Assembly: GCA_964035545.1 (NCBI GenBank)
Contig: CAXIUT010000152.1
Span: forward strand, 1 to 15,379
Direction: 5' to 3'
Origin: Bugula neritina
Taxonomy: Eukaryota; Animalia; Bryozoa
DNA length: 15,379 nt
The position numbers and the translations under genes were made by a program. Below the pieces are notes generated by a model, which saw only the letters and a list, made by a program, of their open reading frames with translations, did not search any database and was not told where the DNA came from. Every line of letters begins with the position of its first letter. Within the stretch, counting starts at the first letter, position 1. Below are positions 1 to 15,379 of this stretch, in pieces.

Positions 1-2
1 GG

Positions 3-1679
3 TTGAGAACTGAATAGCCACTACTGCATATGCCATATAGTCAATGTAATCAACATAATCATTGTAATCATGGTTGTAATCATGGTTGCTCTCATGAAAG
101 GCAAAATGTTTCATATCATTTACAAAGTCCAAGTTATGTCACTAATAGAATGTCTGAGGATGATGGAAGTCGAGTTCAAAGATACACTGAAAAAAGAGAA
201 GTGAATTATCAGCCATTGTCATCTGAGACATAAATTTCTAGAGTTATTCATAGTCCTATCAAAAATAAGGTTAAAAATAAGGTCAAAAATAAAAGGAAGC
301 CTAATCCAAAAGCCCGTAGACGTTTCAGAGTGGCTGTTTTTGCTGTTTATTTTAGTATATTAATACCTTGTCTTGCCCGTAGGATCTATAATAACAAATT
401 AAAAGCATTTATGGCTCAATATCCTCATGAAATAAAGAAGTACTATGTATCAACTAACTAGCCAGCATCAAAATTCAAGTACGACTAGGCTAAAATTTGG
501 TCTAAAATGTAATAGAAAATGAATTTTATGTAGCAGGTATAAAAGTTGAATTTATAATCTATTTTAAAGAATGCTGAAGATGTGAGACAAGTAAAGGTAC
601 GTTTTCAATTTTTAATAAATTAAGAATTAGATTCAAGTTAGCAAGATCATAAAGAACATCTCACGAATGAACAACAACTTATGTTTCCTAAAAGTATAGA
701 GTTTTGTTTGGCTAAATTATTAAATATTGTCAATACAATAACTCATAGTTTTTCTGATGTTTTTGCTCAATAAGATTATATCAGTAATTATTGGAAAACT
801 ATTTCTCAAGGATTACTTAGTGGTACTTTTTTCAATAATTCTCGACCTAAATTACTTAAAAAAGTGTTAGTCACTGGACTAGTAAAGCCTCATCCTTATA
901 GATAGACAATAATTGTTCTTAATTAAGATATCTAAATTGCTCTTTTAACTTTTGACATTTTTTGTAGGATCTATATCTACCAATCGATGAGAAAATTATT
1001 CAAAGAAAAGTAACTAGAGAAATATTCAACTTAAACAATGCTTGTTTCTAACTTTGTGCTCACTATGTTCTATCTTATAGGCTAAATGATTATTGATGAT
1101 CTTCTTAAGAATCATGTTCCTGGTGCAAAAAAAAAAATTAACAATACTCTGAATACAGAATAGCTGCATAAAGTCAATGATAAGAAAATAAGACCTATTA
1201 TTCCTCTTTCTATAAAGAAAAAATTGAAACCCACTGAAGCTAATACACACAAGTTACTTGCTGACCCGCCTATGATTGAATAGGCAAGTACTGCCATAAT
1301 ATAAAATGAAGAAGTAGTAAATGAAATTAAAAGTAAGATGCTCAGCGCTGGTAAAGAGCTGCATGGGTTGTTAAAAAAGTTTATAAAAAAAGATGCTATA
1401 TAATTTCGAGAAGGAACTATTAAGCAGAGACATATTATCCAAGAAGATGGCTAGAGAGCTTAAAATTTGTACAAGTATGAAAAGCGATAAAATCAAATTC
1501 ATTCTAAACATAAGAGTTCAGAGGTAATAGAATCAAAAAATTCTTTAGGAAATAGAAGATTATCTCCATCTCAGTAAAAATATATCGATCAATCTCCATC
1601 AAAGAATAAAAGACATTCTCCTTCTCCTTAGAAAACTAGGAAAGTAATCAGAATAAATAAAAACAAAAAAAGAATTTGA
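3..1679 (+). CDS. Hypothetical protein, probably 5'-partial (~558 aa visible, table 30)
   Basis: A single frame stays open from position 3 to TGA 1677-1679 when TAA/TAG are read as sense. It has a His/Cys repeat (HNHCNHGCNHGCSH), a basic KNKV repeat, a hydrophobic stretch (FRVAVFAVYFSILIPCL) and an SP-rich basic C-terminus. No family recognised. Confidence 0.75.
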
Positions 1680-1839
1680 TTCTATTCTAATGATATAATT
1701 ATAAATTTTTAAAGATTTGAATTGTAAATATTATTTTAGAATATATTTTAGAAGAAACACATCTATCTCTAATATTTTAGTTAAAAAAGTGAATATTTAA
1801 TATTTATTTGAAAAACAAGATGATGATGTTTGGTATAGA

Positions 1840-2352
1840 TCAAGCTGCTCCGTAACCCTTGTAGATGAAGTCGAATCTGCATGAGATATGTCCTTGCCAT
1901 GATTTGGGGTTAATTCTGACACTTCTGGCCCAGAATGGATCATCAAACCAATGTTTAACATGAGTATTTCTGTTGTTGTTAGCAGGGAAGTTATGTCCAT
2001 CATCAGCAGTATCCCAGTAAATTCCGTCATCAGAGTATGATACTTGGTAAGAAGTGATCCATTGGTTGGCGTTGTGTCTACCTTGAGTAATAACTCCGAT
2101 CCATTTCTTTCTGATTGGAGAGTTCACTTGGATCCATTGAGCTTGGTTGTTGCGGCGGGCAGCCCAGCAGTATTCAGAATCAAGTCTAGCAGCTAAGAAT
2201 TGCCAACCAGGCCAACATGTTGACCATGTAACTGGCATGCCAGATTGGACAGCATGGATGTCAAGAAGTTCCTTACCATGCTCTTCACTGTCCTCAAGAG
2301 CGAGGGCAGGAGTGCAGATAAGAAGGAGAACTGCAATGAGGAAGACCTTCAT
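1840..2352 (-). CDS. Secreted F5/8 type C (discoidin) domain protein, 170 aa
   Basis: Signal-peptide-like MKVFLIAVLLLICTPALA. Discoidin motifs ARLD..CW, QWIQV, GVITQGR, QWITSYQVSYSDDG..W, ARSVRINPKSWQGHISCRFD. ATG at 2352, TGA at 1842-1840. Confidence 0.92.
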   Translation of the reverse strand: MKVFLIAVLLLICTPALALEDSEEHGKELLDIHAVQSGMPVTWSTCWPGWQFLAARLDSEYCWAARRNNQAQWIQVNSPIRKKWIGVITQGRHNANQWITSYQVSYSDDGIYWDTADDGHNFPANNNRNTHVKHWFDDPFWARSVRINPKSWQGHISCRFDFIYKGYGAA

Positions 2353-2360
2353 GTTTTGAA

Positions 2361-2600
2361 TCAACTAATTAATGTGATTCCATGAAAGATATTTTGGATT
2401 TAAAGAACCTCTTTTATCGACTAAAGCATAAACTATTAAAAATCTAATAAATGAGGTTGTATATGTTCATAGATATCTGTGATTGTTTCTTACTTTGATT
2501 AACCTTTGATTTCTATGATTTCTTTAAGTTAGTCATCATCATTTTTGTTCTAATAAGTAATTATGAAAGCGATGATTTTACTTTTGATATCCCTTTTCAT
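2361..2600 (-). CDS. Possible small acidic protein, or last exon of an unresolved gene (79 aa from ATG 2600)
   Basis: Protein-like frame (ENKNDDDELKEIIEIKGESKEETITDIYEHIQPHLLDFEEFMLESIKEVLE) ending at TGA 2363-2361. It lies in an otherwise unusually long intergenic gap. Upstream exons were not resolved. Confidence 0.35.
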
Positions 2601-3082
2601 TAGAGTCAAATCCCATTTCCTTCATTTATTATATTTTTGCTAAAGATTTTATGCCATTTCGGTAAAGATCATGATGTTTCTCAACATGAAAATAGTAAAG
2701 CTGAAGTGATATCTAAATTAAAACTATTATAAACTAAAATATTTGAGGAATAAAGAAATGTTTTATTCGTTTTCAGTTAAAAATATATCTTAAAAATTAC
2801 GATTGCTTTGATAAAACTACAATAAAAAGTAAAAAATTATATCTCAATCAGAACTAGCTACAAAAGAGTGAGTATCATTCAAGAAAATTAAAAAAACTAA
2901 ACTTTGTAAATGGATAATATGGATAGATTTAGTAAAACTTTCATATTATAATCAATCAATTTCAAATACTGAATCTAATATTATAAATCATCTTATCTTA
3001 TAAAATAATTAATAATTAACAGCCTTTTTTAAAAGAAATAGAGCGATCTTAATATAACAAAGAGTATGATAAAGGAGAGTAA

Positions 3083-5639
3083 TCATTGGATGGTATCAGT
3101 GGGAAAATCTTTCACTTTTACAATAAATTTTCTTTTTCTCTTCATAATCTATAAGACCTAAACGTAGTCAGGATTGTTTTCTATTTTGTAAGATTCGCAT
3201 AAAGCTTTGCTTGACACGAAGTTAAACACACTATCAGTCTGCTTACCTTCCACATTGACAACTGGAATAGTTTTGTTAGTCTACCCTTCTCCACAGCAAG
3301 TTTTTATCACACAATCGAAAAGAACTTGTTTGAACATCCATACAATAAGGAACATAGCAAAGAAAGCAGAATAATAGTAAGTTCCAAAGACTCTTTGTAG
3401 GATGAATCCAATGTTTTCTACAAAAGCATTTTTGTTGCCATCAGTCTGAATATAAAAATAAGTACGAGGTTATCAAGGAAACTTTAATCGAACATGAAAA
3501 TATTCTGGTTTCCATCCATCCAAATAGTAAAGCAGAAGTGAATGATAATAGCATATGGAAGCCAGCTAGATACTGTTAGATCGAGTGCTTCATCTAACAT
3601 TTTTGGTACTCTGCAATATCTAAAGAAGTAGAACTTTTAGTATAAGTATCTTAAGATCAATGCGAAGAAGGTTATAATAGTGATAACTGGCATGCCTCCA
3701 CAGAAAGACAAACACATGAAAACTAGTGTTAAAATTTAGGCATAATCACTTTACAATTCAAATTCTTAAGGTAGTAAAAGTTTTTCCATTTTGGCTTGAA
3801 CTTCTTATTTCTAGGCTCTGCAGCGATTGATTTTTTCCATGATGCAGTAGTAGATAGGCATACTAAGAGCTGGATGGAAAACAAGGATGATACAATTGAA
3901 AAGAATTTGATATCCAATTTCAACGTACCAATCACTTTCAAAATCAGAATATTGGACTAAAGCATTAGTATTACTCTTGAGATAATCATTTGAGATAAAG
4001 ACAGTGATGGTATCTTTGAACGATATTCCCATTATATCTGCTTGTAACTAAATAAATAAAGTATTACCAGAACTGTTATCAGCACAGTTGTAGAGAAATA
4101 TACGAAAAATAAGTTTTGAATCATGGCTCTAGATTGGTCAGTATGTGTTTTATATCGTCTGAATTGGGAAAGGAATATCACAAAGTGTTTTAAAATGAAT
4201 TTTGTCAATACTATTACTATGGCAATCGCTATAGTTATAGCCAACTTGAGATAATACTTGTAGATGTAATCATAGCAAAAAGTATATATAGCTGTTCCTT
4301 AGCCAGACTTCAATACCTAAACTTGGTTAGATATACACCAACTTTGTGCTATTGTAGTGTTGGTTTATGCTAGGATGGTGGTTGAGGTGTAAGTTGAGGT
4401 ATCTATGGATGAAGCTGCAGAAGGGACAAGGATGTTGAGGAATGAAATAAGCAAAAATCCAATTGCAAGAGCAACTAAGAGCAACAAGTATTGGACGAGT
4501 ACTCGAATCCATCTAGTGCTCCATGTGACATGTTGGTTTTCCCAGATAATTTATCCAGGTTATGTGTGACATTCTTTGATAGTAATTTTTTATCCACAGA
4601 GAAGATAATTTTATGGAGTTTTATCTGAGCAGCAATCGATTGTTTTTCTTTGATGTTTTTATAGTTCTTTCAAGGCATTTTATCTTTCATTGATTGATGA
4701 AAAAGTAATATAGTATTGAATGATTTATTATTTTTAATCATCTTCATGAAGGACAAGTTCTTTGTATATTTCATCAACTTCTTATTGTTTTTTTAAAATT
4801 TATTCATTATAAGAGTCTACTTTTTATTCTTATTTTTTCAATTATAACTTTTTAAGTTCTATTTCAAGATCAAATATCTTTTTTGATAAAGCGATAGATT
4901 CTTGATAATTTCTAACAGGTGCTACTTCTACAACATTTCCAAATTGTTCCATAAACTTATAGATCTAATCAATCGTAACTTTTGCTGGAAATTATATCAT
5001 CTAAACAACACGATAGCTCTTAAGTTTGACCTAAGTTCTGATTTCTTATGTAATATTATTGCCTTTTTTTAACCAATAAAAGTAAAAGATAATGAATATT
5101 AGCATGACAACCATATCTGGAATGACATTCATGTATTTGAAAGTAGCCTGATATTCTGAAGATGATGCTTAGAAGTTTCCTATGGTTGTTGAACCCAACT
5201 TGTAGTTGAAAGAATCTCCTTTAGCCTCCATTACTGTTCCACTGATGACATTATAAATGACAGGAACCAATGATATTAAAGCCATGAGCCAGAAAGCAAA
5301 AATTAGAGATTTTTGAAATTCAAAAAACAATGATATTCCTGGGCCATATGCTTTGATTTTCTATAGATCTGTAAAGACGCCCATTTCTTCTCCTTTCAAA
5401 AATCTGTTACTTTTTTTTTCGGTGTTCTTTAGAGCAAGTTCAAAATCAGCTTTTTGAAATTTAGATGTTGAAACCATAAGACTTTCATCATTTCTTCCAT
5501 GGTTCTGTTATTTTGAATGTCCATTATTGTAGCTGATTTTAACAGCAGGGGTACCTTCCTGAGAAGGCCTAGCGCTTTTGTTGCCAGCCGAGTCTACAAT
5601 GAGTCCATTTGCTGAGTTCTAATTAGAAGAAGCATTCAT
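3083..5639 (-). CDS. OSCA/TMEM63(CSC1)/TMC-superfamily multi-pass membrane channel, ~838 aa; introns 4048-4067 and 3446-3465
   Basis: Motifs YGPGISLFFEF, TTIGN, EPGEIIWEN, YSDFESDWY, FCGGMP, RYCRVPKMLDE and many hydrophobic helices. Two 20-nt GT-AG introns restore the frame from ATG 5639 to TGA 3085-3083. Confidence 0.8.
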
Positions 5640-5692
5640 GTTTCAATAGAAATTCTATATTCAAATAATAATTTATTATGATAAAAGAACAT

Positions 5693-6221
5693 TCATGTAC
5701 TTTCCTATAAAATGTTTCTAACATCTTTGTAGAGATTCTAGAACAATTCAGATACGCTTATCTAATCTTATTTATCTTTCTTTATTTGCATCTAAAATTA
5801 TTTCTACCTTCTTTCTCTTTCTGCTTAAACCATTTCTGCTTCCATCTCTTTGAGTTATTTTTAAAGTTAAAAACTTCTTTTTTATAAGTTTTAGTTATTC
5901 TTTTTGATTTATTACAATTAACGCATTCTATTCTATCATCTCTATCTTCATATTCTAAACTGATTCTTTATTAAGAGTCATCATTTAGTTCTTGAGCTTC
6001 AAAACTTTTTTTTATTTAGTTATTTATTAAAATGTTTTATGAGGATGTTTTTCTTTGATCTAGTTTTTCAGAGTTTTATTTTATTGTTCTAGTTGATAGA
6101 TAAATTAAAATAATTCCATTCTATTGCATTGCTAAAGATATGGAAATGGGTTGCTTTTTAGGTCTTTTAAAGTATGTGGCTTGTTTAATTATTTCTCGAG
6201 TAACTTATCTACTCTTTTCAT
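5693..6221 (-). CDS. Hypothetical coiled-coil protein (exon structure uncertain)
   Basis: ATG 6221 opens an E/K-rich frame that ends at TGA 5750-5748 if unspliced. A second, strongly coiled-coil frame (ELEKELKEMEAEMVEAERERREKEFE) ends at TGA 5695-5693, which implies an intron or indel near 5900. Confidence 0.5.
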
Positions 6222-6334
6222 TTAAATCTACTCATAAATAGAAATAATTAAAAACATTCAATAAATTGTAATTAAAATCTTAAATTTGATTTTTTGATTT
6301 AATTGATGGCCCTTTACTAAACTATAAAGAGTTG

Positions 6335-8207
6335 ATGACATTCTAATTTAAATCTTAATTTAATAATCAAATAGTCCGTATGCGCTACTCCAATCTCTAA
6401 TAATAGTAAGACACCACCTCATCAAAGATAAGAAGATCGATTTACCTCATCATTTCAGTCTCTCTTCTTACCCACACCTTCTCACTCATCTACTCACTCA
6501 TCACCTATAAACAATCAAGTACCGCTTTCATCTCCATCATCATTTCTTCCCTCTCATGCTTCTTTATCTCCAGTTCTCATCTCACCATCTATGGTATCTC
6601 AGTCCTAGGAACCCTCTACATATCCATGATCAAACCTTTCTATACCACACATCAAATGTTCTACCTTGTGGCTCTCAGTGGAATCATCATGTTTGGCTTT
6701 TGGAAGCCTCTGCACTCCATTGGTTCTATCTTTCACTGTCTACCAGGTAAAATCCATGCAAGCATGGTCTCAGGAATAGTATTGATCGTTCTATCAAGGG
6801 TATTCTTTATTTAATTTAGTTTTTTCCTTTGGCCATTTAAAATACTCATGCGTTCTTTTAAATGTCATCAGAGAAAGCCATGGATAATCCTTTCACCATT
6901 TTGAATCTTTTATTTACCAACTTCAACGTTTTAACTTTGATATTGACCATACTATTGGTGTTGGCTTTGTTACTCATGCGTAAAAGACTATAAAAATTTC
7001 CAGTTATAGGTATAATGGCATTTTTAGGTTGTCTAATCAACTATGCTCATATCTTCAAATCATACTCTGATATCTGTAAAATAGAAGATGTCGATTGTAC
7101 TTTCTACATTATCGATAAAAGAAATATCATGGAGCCTACTCTCGCACAATTGATAGAAATTATTCCTCCTGCTCTTGTCATGACCATCATCCTCACCTTT
7201 TAACAATTTTTATATCTTTAAGAGTTCGAAAGAAGAGGAAAAAGATATAGAAACTAAGGAACTCTTGGATAAGTCACAACCTAAACTAAAGTTCTAGCTA
7301 TTGCTAATATCTTTTCAGGTTGTTTTGGAGGTCTACCTATCTGCATCAATATCTTTGGCACTTATTAAAATTTTGCTTTTAATAAACACTATGGCTTCAA
7401 GGGAACTAAATTAGTAGGACTTATGCAAATACCAATTAGTTTTTTCCTATACACCTTAGGAGCTCCTTATTTCTTCATGATTCCTATGTTTGTTCTCTTT
7501 ATTTTGGTTGCTACACCTGTAATATACTTTATTCGGAATGTTCTCAACTATCATTGGAATAATTTACATACAATACTCTTCATAGCTTTGATAAGTGTAT
7601 TTACACATCCGATAATAGCATTGATATTTGCCTGTTTTGTCTCAATTTATTAGATCTCAGAGTTACTAAAACCTGCTCCTTCTGAAGTCATGGTCGAATC
7701 CAATGAATCTCTTTCTTCTTCTAAAGGATTAAAAAGATAATCATCTTTGATGGCTCTTGTGGTTTAAAAAAACCAAGATGAAACGACAAAAAAAGAAAAC
7801 TAGTTTACCAATAGACTAGTAGAAATAGATGAAGATATTCCCATTGAGTATTAAGACAGATAATATGTCATATATCGTTTGATAGGTAAGAATAAAGTTA
7901 TGTAGGTTCTATCAGTTATATGAATTTCCATCATCATTTGAAAGTTTTAAATAGGATTGTAGATAAATATTGTAGGACGGATAAAAATTTACCTTTATTG
8001 CTCAGTCTTCGCTATTCACAGATAATAGATATTTAAACCTTAAACTAGATCGCCTTTTATGTTTAAAATTTGAAACAAAACAATGTAAAAGTTATTTTTA
8101 CTGGACTACATGATAAAATAATAGAACAAATCAAAGATATACCTTTCTTTGAACAAATGTTGCAAACAGAAGAGAAGTGTATTTATCGTATTAATGTCAG
8201 ACATTGA
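6335..8207 (+). CDS. Divergent SulP/SLC26-family anion transporter with C-terminal STAS domain, ~610 aa; introns 6800-6819 and 7886-7905
   Basis: Multiple TM helices. SulP motif ETKVLAIANIFSGCFGGLP. STAS-like tail YRLIGSISYMN...LLLSLRYSQIID...VKVIFTGL. Two 20-nt GT-AG introns restore the frame to TGA 8205-8207. Confidence 0.8.
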
Positions 8208-8298
8208 TTATTTACCTAGTTAAATCATAATTCATAAATATAAGTTAAATACAATTTAACATAACAAGAACTATAATAATAATATTAATATTATTTAT

Positions 8299-8374
8299 GG
8301 GGTTGGGGTTGGGGTTGGGGTTGGGGTTGGGGTTGGGGTTGGGGTTGGGGTTGGGGTTGGGGTTGGGGTTGGGG
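8299..8374 (+). repeat. Internal telomeric tract (GGGGTT)12+GGGG, 76 bp
   Basis: Perfect G4T2 repeats, the Tetrahymena-type telomere unit. The tract starts 91 bp after the SulP stop, following an AT-rich spacer. Confidence 0.97.
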
Positions 8375-10047
8375 ACATTTACTGGACTTTCAGGCACAGA
8401 CATTCGCTTACCAACTGATTATTCTTCTTTTTTGCCAACACTTCGAGATATTTTGCTTTCCTATCCTAAGATATTGGTCAGAGCCTGATTCTTAAAACCA
8501 ACCATATTCGAGATCACTCTTTTCAACTTATTAGATTATCTCGATGGATGATATTTATCCTCGATACAATGCACACTCGTTTATTTTGCTTTACAATTAC
8601 AACAACTTTCATCTAATCTTACACTTTTCTCACTTAAAATATCGACTTTCTTTGCTGAATCACATCTATTAATCTTCAAACATTGTCCTTCAGTTCCTCC
8701 AGTTGGCTTTCTATCTTTAATAGAAAGCTATTCAGTCACAAAAGTTACTAATTTATTGATTTTTCCTTATAAAAATTAAATAGCTTTTTTAGTTTGAATT
8801 CGATTGGCAAAAACTTTATCTTGTTTGGCAAATTACTATTGAATAGTTGTTCCTAAGTTATTTAAAGAATCCTAAAAATAAGTTGATTATATTTTTTTTT
8901 ACATTTTTTGGTTCATTATTTCAATATCACCAACTAGTTATTTATTATATTAGAAAAGTTCTCCTTTGTACATTCTCATGGATATTTATATATCTCCTTT
9001 GATAATTTCAGTCCTATCTTCCATCACTTAGAATAGCCGAGATTCTATGGTTGATAAATGTTAGTGTCGAAGCATTTTAGACATTTTATTTTAAAGATCC
9101 TATCTCATTTTTTACATTTATTTAGTTATCTTACTGTTTTATGAATTACAGTATTACTTTAGTGATTCAATATGAGTAGTTATTTATCCTTTAATCCATT
9201 ATTGATTTGCTTTATTTTACTTTTCTTTCATTTCATCGTTATCTGAGGATTACTATTATGAAGAATCATCTTCTTCTTTATTTTTATTAGTTAGGTTATC
9301 TTTGATAACAACCATTGAAGTTTAATTCAGAGATTAATTTTTACTTATTTTTTTGTTTAAACATAACTCATTACCCATTGATGATTGACTCTTGATCTAT
9401 TTTTCTCCAAAAGGTACAGTTTTATTTTTAGACTAAATTTTATCGACAAAGGCTGACTAGTATAGATTTTATTATCCTTATTCTTTTATTTTTTAAAACT
9501 ATCCTATTTAATGGTTAGAATAAACAGCTATTTTATATTCTTAGTTTTTATTTTTTTTATTTTTCTTTTATTTATCTAACTATTAACAAATCTACTATTT
9601 TTTCTTGATAATACTTTTCTTGATTTATCTAAAAATTGTTTACTTGATAAGTATTAATCAAAAGGCATATCCATTTGTAATGTTTTAACTTGTTAAGCCA
9701 TCCGATTATAATCATTATTCATTGTATTAAGTTTTTTATCTAACATTAAATGAGTAGTTCTGAATTAGTAATGTATATTTTTTGTTCCTGATTCTATCTT
9801 TGCTATCCCTAAATCAAAATAATAGTACTTTATTCTGTCTAACATAGTTTTGATTCTAAATTTTAGTTGTCTGAATAGAAAAATAAATACTATTATAGAT
9901 CTAATTGATCTTTTAGAGAAATGTTTGGATTATTTGATAGTGTTTGGATAGCATAGATTCAAACATATCCTTTGTATCTTTATTGATTGTTGTATTTTAT
10001 CCCAAATTTTATAGAACTCTTGGTTGTATTGTATGATGGAAATTCAT
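8375..10047 (-). CDS. Hypothetical K/E/N-rich protein with no stop before the telomeric tract; introns 9871-9890, 9809-9828 and probably 9576-9595
   Basis: ATG 10047. Three 20-nt GT-AG introns give one continuous frame ending ...KRMSVPESPVNV, which runs in frame into CCC AAC (Pro-Asn) repeats. Confidence 0.7.
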
Positions 10048-10132
10048 ATTTTCGATTTATAATTTCTATTCACATAAAATAACCCCTATTTGCATATGAT
10101 TAACTTATATTAATTGTCGATTGAAAATAAAA

Positions 10133-11065
10133 ATGGAACTGGCTAATGAGGGTATTTTGAATAGAAAAAAACAAAGTCAATCATCACCGACTATTTTCGC
10201 TAACAGAAATACTCTTTATCGAAAACTACATCAAATGACAACTCATAAATAATATTAATTCAAAAAAACATCTGCTTTTCCGATACATAAATATTAGTTT
10301 TTCAAAAATAGACTTGTAAATTATCTAGAATCATAAAAATAACACGTTATTGATCGAAATAAAACTATTAATAGCTTTGCTTTACGTAAAAGTCAATTTT
10401 TAGATAACAAAAAATTAAATAAATAAGGAAGAAGACCTATCCATTCTTAAAATAAAACTTAAAAATAAAATATCTTTAACTATTTACGTTCATTTTCTAC
10501 TTCTACTAACTTTAAAAGTAAAAAAAGTAAAATAAATAAAAAATAACTTGAGAAAACTTCTTTTTAGTTATATCCAAAATAATAATCCTCAATTTAAGTA
10601 CTTAATTTTTTAAACACAAGATCCAAATATACAGATAACTCTTTTCTTAATCCCAATCGTAAAAAATCTTTACCTGTATGTACGATCAATTTTGAACCGA
10701 AAAAGAGAAAGAATTCTAAAAGTAAAAATGTTTTTGATACTTATCTCACATAAAAATTAGGTTATCAGTCCTAGATATTTTAGAAAAATTCTTTTAAGAA
10801 AGCAAGTAAAAATTAAAAGTTTTTTGAAGAATAAAAAGACAATATTGACATATTTCAAACATCTTAAGTATTAATTCTTGAATAAAAACAAAAAGATGAC
10901 AAAGTTTCTAAATAAAAAAAAGAATAGAACTTAAAAATATTCAAAAAATCACCAAAAAAGCGATATTCGATTCAACTAAAACTTCAAAAAGGAAATAGTA
11001 TGGAACATTATGTCGGACCTTGGACTAAATAAGGAAATCCATAAGAAAATTAATCCAATTATTGA
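10133..11065 (+). CDS. Hypothetical basic low-complexity protein, 310 aa
   Basis: ATG 10133 to TGA 11063-11065 with no internal TGA. It is divergent from the upstream gene across an 85-bp spacer. Confidence 0.7.
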
Positions 11066-11124
11066 ATACTAATTTATCAAAATTTCTCATAGTTTATATA
11101 TCTTAATGCTTTTATATATTTAAA

Positions 11125-12442
11125 ATGACTGATCAGCAAAACCAGAGGGAATGGAAATATCCAAACCTTCCTCCTCGTCCTTTCACCTTCCCAGTAAAAG
11201 TTTCTCATCTGGATGTAGATAGTCCTGAATCTTCTCTTAACAAATCTCAATTGAGAGGATTCTTCAACATAGCTGGAATATTTGGTATTATCTTTTTCGT
11301 TACACAACCAATAATCAACTTCATAGACCATGGCTACTTTTTAGAAGCTACACTCTACAACACAGTCAAGGTAGATTTTTTATTTTGTCTTTTTAACTGG
11401 CCGTTATTCTTCATCTGGTAAATATCTTAATATGCAGGTCGTTTACTTCATATTTTTTACAAGTTCTTATCGTAAAAGGATTAAATATAAAACTAGCCTT
11501 AGTACTACAACACCTAACTCAAGCTGGTCTTTTCGCCTACTCGACCTACGTTATTCTTTAAAACGACTGGTGTTCAACCCATTCCTCATTTATAATCATG
11601 CAAGCCTGTGTCCACTTCATGAAAATGCATTCATATATTACAGTTAACAGGTACCATCTCCTTTATAAAGAGATATGCGCTAAAATTACGAATAGGCAAA
11701 ATTAAATAACAAATAACCTGAAACTAACTATCCAAATAATGTAACTCTATCAGATTTTTCTTTATTCATGCTGACTCCATGGCTAGTCTATGCTGTTTAC
11801 CCACGTCGAGCTGTCATCAACTACTTCTACTTATTCAAAAAAATGGTCTTTATCGTGGTTATACTTCTTACTCTCTACATGATAAACTCATAGTTCATTC
11901 AGCCTTGGATCCATCAAGTCGGAAAGATACCCATCTACTAACTAATCCTACGTTTAATGCTACCAACAACTCTCTTTGTTGTTATTTGTTTTTCTCTTGT
12001 TTTTTAGCAAATGTGTAACTTCTTTGCTGAATTGAGTCGACTTGATCACAGATAGTTTTATTAAGATTGGTGGAATTCGTATACGTATGAGTAGTTTAAT
12101 CGAAAATGGAATAAGCCAGTTCATCTATTTCTCTATAGACATGTATACCTTTAGCTAATGATTCGATATAAACAGTCGAAAGTGATTGCACAGGCATCTA
12201 CCTTTCTTTTTAGTGCTTTTCTTCATTAGTTTTTATTGGCTATTATTTTTAGGATAATTAGACCTATTTTAGTGATGTTTATCTTGTTTCAAGTGCCTTT
12301 GATAAAGTTTACTAAATGGATGAGAAATAATCGAGAGGGTTTGTATTTGATGTGGTTTGGACTAATGTTCGGACCCACTCTTATCCTCTGCACTTACTTT
12401 ATTGTAGATTAACAAGTAGCCAATATGTTCACCAAAAAGTGA
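11125..12442 (+). CDS. MBOAT O-acyltransferase of the DGAT1/SOAT(ACAT) family, 425 aa; introns 11418-11437 and 11651-11670
   Basis: Motifs LRGFFN, MKMHSY, YPNNVT, FAELSRLDHREFYEDWWNS, RKWNKPVH, RHVY and catalytic SAFLHE. I cannot distinguish DGAT1 from sterol acyltransferase. Confidence 0.93.
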
Positions 12443-12547
12443 TTCTTTATTCTAAATTACTCCTTTTTGTTAAACCTCGTAATTGAGAACTATAATTATG
12501 AATAACTACAATATTGCTTTAATGATTATTAAAATATCAAAAGTATA

Positions 12548-13290
12548 TCATAAAGTATCACTAAATTCACTGCGAACAGCCTATAGAAATTTAGACATAT
12601 TCTACTTCTGTAACTTAAGAAATTTCATCTACTATTATCTCTTCTCTCCCTACATTGTCTTGTTCTCCCTGATCTATTTCTACATCAAATCTTTTTGACA
12701 CATCAATAAACTCTTCTTTCTCTCCAATTGTTCTTTTAATCTCCCCAAATTTTGATATTCTTCCTCAATAACATCACTTCCCTACTCTGATTCGACTTGT
12801 TTTCTCATACCATAAGTTATCGACGATTGATATATAGTCTAATAGGCAGCCAGAGTCATCTTATGTTCATCTCTGACTCGCATCAGAAGTAGTCCTCGTT
12901 CTGGACAATCAACGGCTACTTGTCGAATAATTTAATCTAGAACTTGACTATACAATTCTTCTCTGATAGGACATACTCCTGATAGTTTTGCTTATCTTTC
13001 TTAAAGTATTTTATCTAATCTTTAGATCAATTCGAGGACATCTTCTCTTGATGATGGTTGATGTGATACGTATTGGATATGTAGTTTGTTATTATGGTCA
13101 GTCCAGTCTCTGGGAGGGAGAATGGAGTCAATAATTTCTTGATAGATCAAGAGATACATTAAAGTTTGGGTGGAGATGATAATGCGACTTACTTTTTTGT
13201 TTTTTATTGATGGTAGTCTTTCATGTTTTGGTAGATTTCTACGCCTGGTTCGTATTTGATAAGAGATTATGCGGATAGAGTATTGTTCAT
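12548..13290 (-). CDS. DNALI1: Axonemal inner-arm dynein light intermediate chain p28 (DNALI1/IDA4 family), 240 aa; intron 13138-13157
   Basis: Motifs SLIKYEP, EEIIDSILPPRDW, GVCPIREELYSQVLDEIIRQV, CPERGLLLMRVRDE, YGMRK, EEEMKFLK. Confidence 0.92.
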
Positions 13291-13630
13291 TTTCTAAATT
13301 TAAATACTAAAAGGTGTCAATAGGATAATAGTAGTGATCAATAGTTATCAATTATATTTTGAATCATAGATATTCAATAATAATTTCATGGTTAATTCTG
13401 ACTGAAGTATTCAATAAAATATGATAATCGAAATGGATTAAAAAACTTGTAATTAGAATAGAAGTATGTTTTAGTTTATTTCATTGAATATTAAAAGAAT
13501 TTTATTCAGATAATCGAAATATATTGTCAATTGATCTACTTTATATCAAGTAGAATTATAGGGAAATATATTTGATATCATTTAAGATAAATATAAAAGA
13601 GCTAGAGTGTGTATTTATCATGGATGATTC

Positions 13631-13714
13631 GGGGTTGGGGTTGGGGTTGGGGTTGGGGTTGGGGTTGGGGTTGGGGTTGGGGTTGGGGTTGGGGTTGGGG
13701 TTGGGGTTGGGGTT
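13631..13714 (+). repeat. Internal telomeric tract (GGGGTT)14, 84 bp
   Basis: Perfect G4T2 repeats with the same polarity as the other two tracts. Confidence 0.97.
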
Positions 13715-13760
13715 TAAAAGGATATTTAAAGGCATTGATGTAACTATATTGTTGTTTTGA

Positions 13761-14324
13761 ATGTATGTATATAAGATAAGATTGATATAACTTTATAATA
13801 AGCTCTTTAGTTTTACAAGGCATGTGTGCCCCTACTATTACAAAATAAATGATCCTTCCAAAACTTATGATTCTAAAAAAAACTAATTCGCTTATGCCAA
13901 TTAATGCATTAAGTAGAGATATAATTTATATAATTTAAAAATACAATAAATGGTCAAACAGTTCAAGCCAAGCAAAAACGATTCAATTAGAATGGGAAAA
14001 AGTAAAAACAACAAATCAAATAAAATACACAAATACAGACCACTAATAAATGTCTATGAGCCTATGGAAATCTAAAATGAACCTATGGATATCTAATATT
14101 CTATTTAACAGCAGTTGACTCTACTTTTAACTAACGCCTTTGAAGAACTACTAAACTACTGTCTATCACTATTACTAAAATAGGTGCCATATTTTATCAA
14201 TATTATATTGTATGTATCTAAATCAAATAAAAAATGTTGTTAATTTTATATTTATCATTAAAATCGAATAAATGGGTAAACGACGATACTGCACTGGCAC
14301 TTGGTTTCCGGGTGGTCCTCATGA
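13761..14324 (+). CDS. Orphan ORF upstream of and overlapping rep (187 aa from ATG 13761, or 124 aa from ATG 13950)
   Basis: TGA-free frame containing a basic patch (RMGKSKNNKSNKIHKYRP) and a tandem EPMEIE-N-EPMDIE repeat. It overlaps rep by 53 nt. A one-stop code makes long chance ORFs more likely. Confidence 0.45.
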
Positions 14325-15219
14325 TTTATAGTAGTTTTTAAAACTATTTTATCCTACCTATTGCTCATGGATCTCAGGGGAACCAGAAACATGTCCTAAA
14401 ACATAAAGACTACATATACAATTTGTTATGTACAATAAAGAAGGATTATCCAAAAAGACTCTACATAATGTTCACAATAAATCTCATTTTTAAACTTATG
14501 AAGCCATTCAGCACTGGTAGAAATGGACCAACTATGGAAACAAATAGAAAAAAGGAATAGAGTTGGGAAGTAGACCTAAAAATCCTAACATTCCTTCATT
14601 TTATAACATGAAAACTTAAGAAATTTATAGCTTTTCAAGATAAAAAGCAAAGGAACTAACTCCTAATCAATATTTGATTTATAATAAAATAAGATAAGTG
14701 TTCCAGGAAGTAAATAAACCAGCAGAACCTCTAACTGAATGGAAACCTCCAAGATGGGATAAAACCATCTAGTTCATCACATAAAAACATAGAAATTTAT
14801 GGCTGTATGGACCAACTGGGTTCGGTAAAACCTACATGATGAAAGAACTAAGTAAGATCCATGTAGTTTATAAGTGGAATTTCTAACAAAATTCACTCTA
14901 CCAAAACCCTCCAGAGAACACTCAGATAATATGGATGTAAGAAGTACAAAAGGGCAAATCGATAACAAAGGGAAAGCTGAAGGAGTATGCTGATGATGCA
15001 AGTGGTTCAATAACATTAAATCCTAAATATAGGACTCCTTTGACAATACCTCGTCCTCTACTTGTAATAACTTCAAACTATCGTCCTGATGATCCTGAAG
15101 ATGGTCCATATTTTAAGAGTTGGGACGAGTCGATGGAAGAAAGATTTACTGTGATCAATGTTGAAGATTATGTTGAGAAGTATCAGATAAATGTTCCAAG
15201 AAAAAGCGTTATCAAGTGA
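14272..15219 (+). CDS. rep: CRESS DNA virus-type replication initiator Rep (HUH endonuclease + superfamily 3 helicase), 315 aa, intronless, table 30
   Basis: RCR motif I-like CTGTW. ETCPKTERL-HIQF (motif II, 14413). SHFE. YGNKE (motif III, 14533). Walker A LWLYGPTGFGKT (14809-14832). Walker B IIWMEE (14926-14943). Motif C VITSN (15064-15078). Arg-finger-like EERF. 13 in-frame TAA/TAG codons and no internal TGA. Confidence 0.93.
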
Positions 15220-15295
15220 TCTATTTCTATTAAAATATCTATGATATCACTATTTTGTATTTAATAGTTATTAATCATTTATAAAATAAGGAGAA

Positions 15296-15379
15296 GGGGT
15301 TGGGGTTGGGGTTGGGGTTGGGGTTGGGGTTGGGGTTGGGGTTGGGGTTGGGGTTGGGGTTGGGGGGGTTGGGGTTGGG
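15296..15379 (+). repeat. Terminal telomeric tract (GGGGTT)n, 84 bp to the window end, with one G7 variant
   Basis: G4T2 repeats with the correct polarity for a right-hand chromosome end, starting 76 bp after the rep stop codon. Confidence 0.97.

Follow-up and report, generated by a model that had tools for sequence, protein, structure and literature searches.

A Rep-like gene with in-frame TAA and TAG codons beside a ciliate telomere, probably an endogenised CRESS-type gene of a peritrich-type ciliate

Replication proteins (Rep) of the CRESS-DNA viruses (single-stranded, with circular genomes that encode Rep), Cressdnaviricota, consist of about 300 residues and combine the domains Viral_Rep (PF02407) and RNA_helicase (PF00910). 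The hosts of most CRESS-DNA viruses are unknown. Rep-derived endogenous viral genes are known in animals, plants, fungi and protists such as Giardia and Entamoeba, where a lone Rep gene lies in host DNA and the rest of the virus is missing. A Rep-like gene was analysed here at positions 14272-15219 (+) of a stretch of 15,379 nucleotides from the assembly of the bryozoan Bugula neritina (GCA_964035545.1, contig CAXIUT010000152.1, positions 1 to 15,379); this whole stretch is called the window below. The gene has TAA and TAG as sense codons and TGA as its sole stop, and is followed by a ciliate-type telomere. It is probably a CRESS-type Rep gene that was endogenised in a peritrich-type ciliate and is kept at the end of a macronuclear chromosome.

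Two features of the locus, namely, the genetic code and the telomere, have counterparts in described systems. Cruciviruses and other CRESS genomes have been reported in which open reading frames (ORFs) are complete only under a ciliate code with TAA/TAG read as Gln (PMC7468197). Assignment of UAA and UAG to Glu, with UGA as the sole stop, is the peritrich nuclear code, NCBI table 30 (PMC11687900). Gene-sized, telomere-capped macronuclear chromosomes are described at least for such ciliates as Nyctotherus and the spirotrichs (PMC2633312).

The window Rep shares with CRESS Reps the domain order, the length of about 300 residues and collinearity, and motif II (H-u-Q), motif III (Y-x-x-K), Walker A, motif C and the arginine finger occupy the same columns; however, overall identity by hhalign is only about 24%, and the curated Pfam families are not reached on its open pieces. 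Unlike CRESS Reps, it has TAA and TAG as sense codons and is located on linear telomere-ended DNA, with neither a capsid gene nor a nonanucleotide hairpin. As in the cruciviruses, in-frame TAA/TAG in a CRESS-type Rep gene is taken as a pointer to a ciliate-like host, but the cruciviruses have circular genomes with capsid genes and Gln was proposed for them, whereas the lineage of the window reads Glu and the gene is probably chromosomal. The segment carrying it resembles the gene-sized ciliate chromosomes in its single gene, short length and short spacer before the telomere, although only one telomere is seen. The endogenous Rep genes of other eukaryotes are likewise lone; in contrast to them, the window Rep is intact and recoded, lies subtelomerically on a macronuclear molecule of a ciliate and has a recoded counterpart of full length elsewhere. 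A literature search found no report of an intact, recoded, subtelomeric Rep gene in ciliates. What we rate as new is the combination of a Rep in a Glu-type code, a ciliate telomere beside it and a recoded homologue elsewhere; lone endogenous Reps and CRESS genomes in a Gln code were already known.

The Rep frame comprises 316 codons counting the stop, that is, 315 sense codons from the ATG to the TGA at 15217-15219. It contains eight TAA and five TAG codons in frame (13 TAR codons, where TAR is TAA or TAG), no internal TGA and no frameshift, which agrees with the count of an earlier note made on this stretch from the letters alone. The other five frames of 14272-15219 contain 4-10 TGA each. 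In the comparisons, the ORF was handled with X at each TAR, and library searches used the separate open pieces.

A homologue of the gene was found on a metagenome scaffold of 2511 nt, L002; a second sequence, L003, is identical to it across their overlap. The homologue, L002:1443-2393 (+), is also a 316-codon frame from ATG to TGA, with 10 in-frame TAR and no TGA. With X at the TAR positions, the two proteins show 45% identity over 304 columns, from residue 1 to about residue 305, in one frame, and the alignment score is 735 against 35 +/- 6 for shuffles. Since the homology runs in one frame across 13 and 10 TAR codons without a frameshift, TAR is a sense codon in both organisms and both copies have been kept open. 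The Rep ORF is, judged by its sequence, a real and maintained gene. The homologue is adjoined by an unrelated small gene, and its DNA is non-circular. The scaffold ends in GGGG 118 nt past the stop of the homologue, which is suggestive of a telomere and possibly the start of one.

The view that the locus is a decaying pseudogene or a standard-code contaminant, in which the 13 TAA/TAG are true stops, draws on the fact that the standard code splits the frame into 13 open stretches of at most 92 codons and that Pfam finds no Rep on the pieces. We consider it extremely improbable, given that homology to L002 crosses every TAR in one frame with no frameshift, that the frame has zero TGA against 4-10 in the others, that its TAR density equals that of the host genes and that a host gene, p28, proves TAR to be sense in this lineage. 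The earlier note had rejected both possibilities, and the intact TGA-only frame, the host-like codon use and the recoded L002 homologue bear this out. Its remark that standard-code pipelines would miss such a gene also holds: with the standard stop set, no + strand ORF of at least 70 aa is listed at the locus, and in public protein sets the relatives of the Rep are present solely as unannotated fragments of 65-130 aa.

Relatives are few. An unbiased phmmer search of all 1.84 billion cluster representatives with the longest open piece of the Rep (90 aa, C-terminal) returned just two true relatives, both short fragments, whose contigs, L001 and L002 among them, were taken for comparison; the matches P0001 and P0004 were discarded as repeat-driven. 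A word-based protein search with the N-domain piece of L002 returned only the self-match. Scans of IMG/VR found no relatives of the Rep, and one match there, L014, was dismissed as a chance match of 16 residues. Virus-derived genes of organisms with reassigned stop codons are thus systematically hidden, and only unannotated fragments of this Rep family are public.

One of the two true relatives, P0003, is carried by the sequence L001, whose Rep helicase comes next in relatedness to the family. Convergent to this Rep-helicase relative, L001 contains a 178-codon ORF free of all three stops (464-1000, -) with a faint Circo_capsid hint (E 0.17). These features make it probable that L001 represents a fragment of a genuine CRESS virus. 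The stop-free ORF with its capsid hint suggests that free viruses of the wider Rep lineage probably exist.

Likeness to CRESS Reps was established through the virome contig L004, which was obtained by a metagenome pattern scan with an alignment of the C-terminal pieces of the family. The contig, 3.6 kb in length, uses the standard code, and its first ORF encodes a genuine Rep, with Pfam matches to Viral_Rep (9.7e-23) and RNA_helicase (1.2e-9). The helicase half of the window Rep shows 38% identity to the L004 Rep over 106 columns (z 16.5). A comparator hidden Markov model (HMM) was built from 120 environmental CRESS Reps gathered with the L004 Rep; they belong to an unclassified environmental clade with genomes of about 3 kb, including L004, 'Sewage-associated circular DNA virus-21' and 'Chemarfal virus 114'. 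This HMM matches the X-marked ORF with 20.0 bits in a single collinear domain (model positions 41-270 of 273, residues 46-302), L002 with 15.8 bits and P0003 of L001 with 29.4 bits, while the maxima over 300 shuffles were 2.4-5.4 bits (2.4 for the window ORF). With hhalign, the two-member family aligns to the Rep alignment over 215 columns with a probability of 97.7% and E 2e-12.

The two halves of the protein contribute unequally. The superfamily 3 (SF3) helicase domain, at 14797-15177 (+), includes Walker A, Walker B, motif C and the arginine finger; it was delimited by the L004 alignment, the C-domain HMM (17.6 bits over residues 176-302, shuffle maximum 4.6) and hhalign, in which the helicase part gives E 1.2e-11. 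For the HUH-type endonuclease-like domain, the part that could be aligned lies at 14407-14586 (+) and extends between motif II (H-u-Q) and motif III (Y-x-x-K); the N-domain HMM of the 120 Reps places ORF residues 46-105 on model positions 47-104 with 8.3 bits (shuffle maximum 2.9). The entire domain probably spans from the ATG to about 14600. The first 150 codons score 10.0 bits, which was reached by none of 5000 shuffles (for L002, by one of 5000). The His and Gln of motif II and the Tyr and Lys of motif III, as well as the Gly, Gly and Lys of Walker A, the Thr-Ser-Asn of motif C and the arginine finger, stand in columns occupied by one and the same residue in 97-100% of the 120 Reps. Motifs II and III are thus found in the register of an HUH domain, with modest support. 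Within the first 45 residues, a short segment is conserved between the Rep and L002.

Curated libraries gave little with the open pieces. No open piece gave a match to Viral_Rep or Gemini_AL1, and the 92-aa piece of L002 that spans motifs II-III was likewise negative with Pfam. The Walker A piece of the Rep gave generic P-loop matches and RNA_helicase (PF00910) at E 1e-3, under the cut-off, and nothing beyond generic P-loop matches was obtained for the Rep pieces with Pfam, PHROGs and NCBIfam. The HUH/SF3 profile match expected in the earlier note was accordingly found with the 120-Rep HMM and with hhalign, but on the pieces the Pfam model Viral_Rep gave no match and RNA_helicase stayed below its cut-off.

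The same results bear on the reading that the locus is a host P-loop ATPase gene without an HUH endonuclease, its N-terminal likeness to Reps being due to chance. For the N-terminal part alone hhalign gives E 0.07, Pfam is negative on the L002 piece just mentioned, and an AlphaFold2 model made with the N-domain piece of L002 and the window pieces as rows has a pLDDT (predicted local distance difference test) of 33. The chance likeness would have to account for an N-half score that the shuffles did not reach (once for L002), for a collinear match of ORF residues 46-105 to model positions 47-104 and for His, Gln, Tyr and Lys in invariant Rep columns, all kept between the Rep and L002; the helicase, moreover, is specifically of the CRESS Rep SF3 type. 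This makes a plain ATPase gene very unlikely, and the assignment of the ORF to Rep-type genes, with an HUH-like N-terminal part and an SF3 helicase, is supported by the profile and motif comparisons.

The genetic code of the lineage was read from the gene of the axonemal inner-arm dynein light chain p28 (DNALI1) at 12548-13363 (-), which lies in the preceding segment, outside the Rep element. Its identity follows from matches of two pieces to Pfam PF10211 (E 1e-12 and 6e-8) and from PDB 7ju4_v and 8j07_e0. A search with its conserved N-terminal stretch gave 12 fragments, 76-100% identical, and contigs from five different organisms (L005, L006, L007, L010 and L013) were used for the comparison. 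Their p28 genes are collinear, the four complete ones have 201-203 codons to the TGA, and they are 77-87% identical to that of the window. Opposite the 14 TAR codons of the window p28, the relatives have Glu 34 times, TAR 9 times, Gln 6 times (5 of them in one column), Asp twice, Thr twice and Ser once. Opposite the TAR codons of the relatives, Glu occurs 72 times, Asp twice and Gln never. As controls, GAA/GAG codons of the window p28 stand opposite TAR 17 times and CAA/CAG codons not once. The TAR positions include Glu positions conserved from Chlamydomonas to human. It is strongly shown by these comparisons that TAA and TAG encode Glu in this lineage. The sole stop is TGA, with which the Rep, p28, the p28 orthologues and the remaining long frames all end. 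One of the contigs with p28, L007, ends in the same GGGGTT telomere as the segments of the window.

The p28 orthologue set thus gives the same reading as the peritrich code, with the exception of one TAA in a universally Gln column. This column has Gln in all five orthologues, Chlamydomonas and human, and the TAA in it may reflect a true Gln-to-Glu change or hint at some ambiguity. Two further p28 columns have Gln in Chlamydomonas and human and Glu or TAR throughout the clade of the window; an older stage with TAR read as Gln, later re-read as Glu, would leave such a pattern.

Within the Rep itself, the CRESS Rep profile has match columns for 9 of the 13 TAR codons. Five of these columns are led by Glu (shares 0.98, 0.42 and 0.29) or Asp (0.72 and 0.99), with a Gln share of at most 0.14, and the remaining four by Lys, Gly, Arg or Met. 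The claim in the earlier note that TAR falls where Reps require an acidic residue is therefore borne out for five of the nine placed codons and fails for four. When the Rep and L002 are compared, TAR of either one most often faces Glu in the other. For the TAR codons of the Rep, translation as Glu is only favoured by these columns; the Glu reading follows from p28, the host gene in which it is shown.

That the host might use the common ciliate code, with TAA/TAG as Gln, and not the peritrich code, is highly improbable. The single p28 TAA in a column that is Gln in the orthologues, Chlamydomonas and human would agree with it, and on the Rep alone Gln trails Glu by only about 1 bit in a residue-naming method that is correct for only 7 of 14 ordinary codons. 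Across the six orthologues, however, TAR behaves like GAA/GAG and never like CAA/CAG, and it occupies universally conserved Glu columns of p28.

In codon use, the Rep resembles the genes of the host. Its GC content at third codon positions (GC3) is 0.29, TAR occurs 4.1 times per 100 codons and makes up 0.39 of the Glu codons, and its codon frequencies correlate at 0.76 with those of four host genes. The host genes themselves have GC3 of 0.23-0.34, TAR at 3.9-7.0 per 100 codons and correlations of 0.77-0.91, while the L004 Rep correlates with them at 0.27. The L002 copy is GC-rich in codon use, with GC3 of 0.67. Since the Rep and the L002 copy each match the make-up of their own host, long residence is needed. 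The unusual code points in the same direction: written in the code of its host, the Rep is a long-resident, probably endogenised viral gene.

The window contains three telomere arrays (GGGGTT)n of 77-84 nt, at 8298-8374, 13631-13714 and 15296-15379, all on the + strand, and no CCCCAA arrays. The last of them, with 14.5 copies, forms the end of the window (15296-15379, +), and the second (13631-13714, +) closes the segment that precedes the one with the Rep, bounding the latter on its left. On the simplest reading, the window would consist of three one-telomere contigs laid end to end. The Rep sits by itself on the third segment (13715-15379, 1665 nt). Because the segments are separately telomere-ended, the host genes are neighbours of the Rep in the file, and chromosomal linkage to it is not implied. 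The statement of the earlier note that the neighbouring host genes share the code is thus confirmed insofar as p28 reads TAR as Glu, but these genes belong to other telomere-bounded segments and their linkage to the Rep is unsupported.

A 3' spacer of 76 nt (15220-15295, +) separates the stop codon of the Rep from the telomere. This host-type telomere in the same segment joins the gene to a chromosome, provided that the assembly is correct. The distance agrees with the one given in the earlier note, as does that of 91 nt past the gene at 6307-8207 (+). Upstream of the Rep, directly after the preceding telomere array, there is an AT-rich 5' flank (13715-14271). It contains a 21-nt direct repeat at 14056-14096 (+), about 175 nt upstream of the ATG (2.0 copies, 90% matches, Tandem Repeats Finder), which is iteron-like only in being a direct repeat; DNA folding of this region shows no structure. 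Two matches to NANTATTAC were found in the flank, at 13833-13841 and 14167-14175; the whole window has 7 against 5.1 expected, that is, a chance level. Around neither site is there an origin hairpin (folds against shuffles, z -0.2 and -0.4). Scans of the window with Rfam and for tRNA gave no matches.

The 557-nt flank has neither a conserved ORF nor a capsid remnant, and matches neither the ORF of L001 with the capsid hint nor the ORFs that L004 has besides its Rep; tblastx of the flank against the flanks of L002 and the remainder of L004 showed no similarity. Terminal redundancy of the Rep segment was not found, the molecule ending in a telomere. Neither of the marks of a CRESS-DNA virus genome, namely, circularity with a NANTATTAC-type stem-loop and a capsid gene beside rep, is present. 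No second copy of the Rep was found elsewhere in the window or in the p28 contigs of the relatives. The lack of a capsid gene and of an origin hairpin argues for an endogenised Rep gene rather than a virus genome.

These data also decide how far an exogenous CRESS-type virus or plasmid of peritrich ciliates, adapted to their code, may be considered, its telomere having been added de novo to a linearised macronuclear copy or joined by an assembly chimera. Such an element would explain why the nearest kin are virome Reps, why all catalytic residues are intact and why the segment is small (1665 nt) with one telomere only; the convergent stop-free ORF of L001 with its Circo_capsid hint at E 0.17 points to viruses in the wider lineage, and CRESS genomes that need a ciliate code, the cruciviruses with TAR as Gln, are on record (PMC7468197). 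It leaves unexplained the 557-nt flank without a capsid gene or remnant, the missing origin hairpin and terminal redundancy, a distance from stop to telomere similar to that of a host gene (76 and 91 nt), the L002 homologue on non-circular DNA beside an unrelated small gene and the IMG/VR scans without any relative. A free virus or plasmid is thus unlikely, though not negligible.

A smaller share of our confidence, such that we regard it as rather improbable, goes to the 1.7-kb segment being a complete or near-complete telomere-capped mini-chromosome, with the Rep as its sole gene, kept across peritrich-type lineages. In that case, a CRESS replicon would have turned into a linear macronuclear molecule, or a ciliate would have co-opted the Rep for DNA handling.

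We consider the probable explanation to be an endogenised Rep gene that a peritrich-type ciliate keeps at one of its macronuclear chromosome ends. Several observations weigh against it. The Rep segment has a single telomere and starts abruptly after another array, and a chromosome end, a whole tiny chromosome and an assembly join are all three possible. The N-terminal match is weak, as the hhalign value for that part shows, motif I is unaligned, and the N-terminal 45 residues fall outside the profile alignment. Open pieces of the Rep, L002 and L001 do not reach the Pfam cut-offs of Viral_Rep and RNA_helicase, and PDB sequence searches with the C-terminal piece of the Rep and a 91-aa N-domain piece of L002 gave nothing relevant. 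The L004 contig was reached by a pattern scan, so that part of its alignment score was selected for. In the L002 homologue, the last residue of Walker A is off the consensus; an active ATPase is therefore not required of every member of the family. From the Rep alone, the summed log-odds place Glu first by only about 1 bit over Gln, Lys and Asp. As for the frame itself, TGA-free runs of at least 150 codons are common in the AT-rich window (n = 35), one of them, of 487 codons with 50 TAR, being surely non-coding, and the 13 TAR of the Rep frame lie inside the range of its other frames (10-22). Since its TGA-free length and TAR count are unremarkable, the observation gains significance only via homology; zero TGA, against 4-10, together with full-length homology in one frame raises the Rep frame above chance.

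Under the endogenisation model, a CRESS-type virus or plasmid would have been the source of the gene, since the closest kin that could be detected are Reps from viromes. Selection would then have kept it as a chromosomal gene long enough for it to take on the code and composition of the host. The gene would be translated into a protein predicted, from its motifs, to nick single-stranded DNA by the motif III tyrosine and to unwind DNA with ATP; this nicking and helicase chemistry is probably retained, as all placeable catalytic residues are intact. With no cognate origin or capsid gene beside it, the Rep most likely acts in trans; it would most likely be a gene retained or co-opted by the host and not the driver of a whole virus.

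The connection that the earlier note drew between a CRESS lineage and a peritrich host accordingly stands in the sense of an endogenous gene and not in that of a demonstrated virus of this host. To our knowledge, the code with TAA and TAG as Glu is used only by peritrich ciliates. A Rep lineage written in a code restricted to one group of organisms is a pointer to the host that is independent of co-occurrence. If the gene is expressed and conserved, a viral replication initiator would have been kept by a ciliate on its somatic chromosomes.

The other genes of the window are located on the two preceding segments. The gene at 6307-8207 (+) ends with TGA (8205-8207), and 91 nt separate it from the telomere array that starts at 8298; the name SulP given to it in the earlier note found no backing, there being no Pfam, NCBIfam or PDB match on its open pieces. 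A 24-aa piece with a weak Pfam MBOAT match (E 0.008) points to an MBOAT/DGAT-like gene at 11255-12442 (+), and a weak match with E 0.09 to an anoctamin-like membrane gene at 3657-5642 (-); both genes contain TAR at 4-5 per 100 codons. A gene of 170 codons at 1843-2352 (-) encodes a secreted-looking protein with a discoidin (F5/8 type C) domain. It has a GC content of 0.45 and no TAR, its codon use correlates at 0.27 with that of the other host genes, and in composition it stands apart from the rest of its segment, perhaps because it was acquired recently or belongs to a special expression class.

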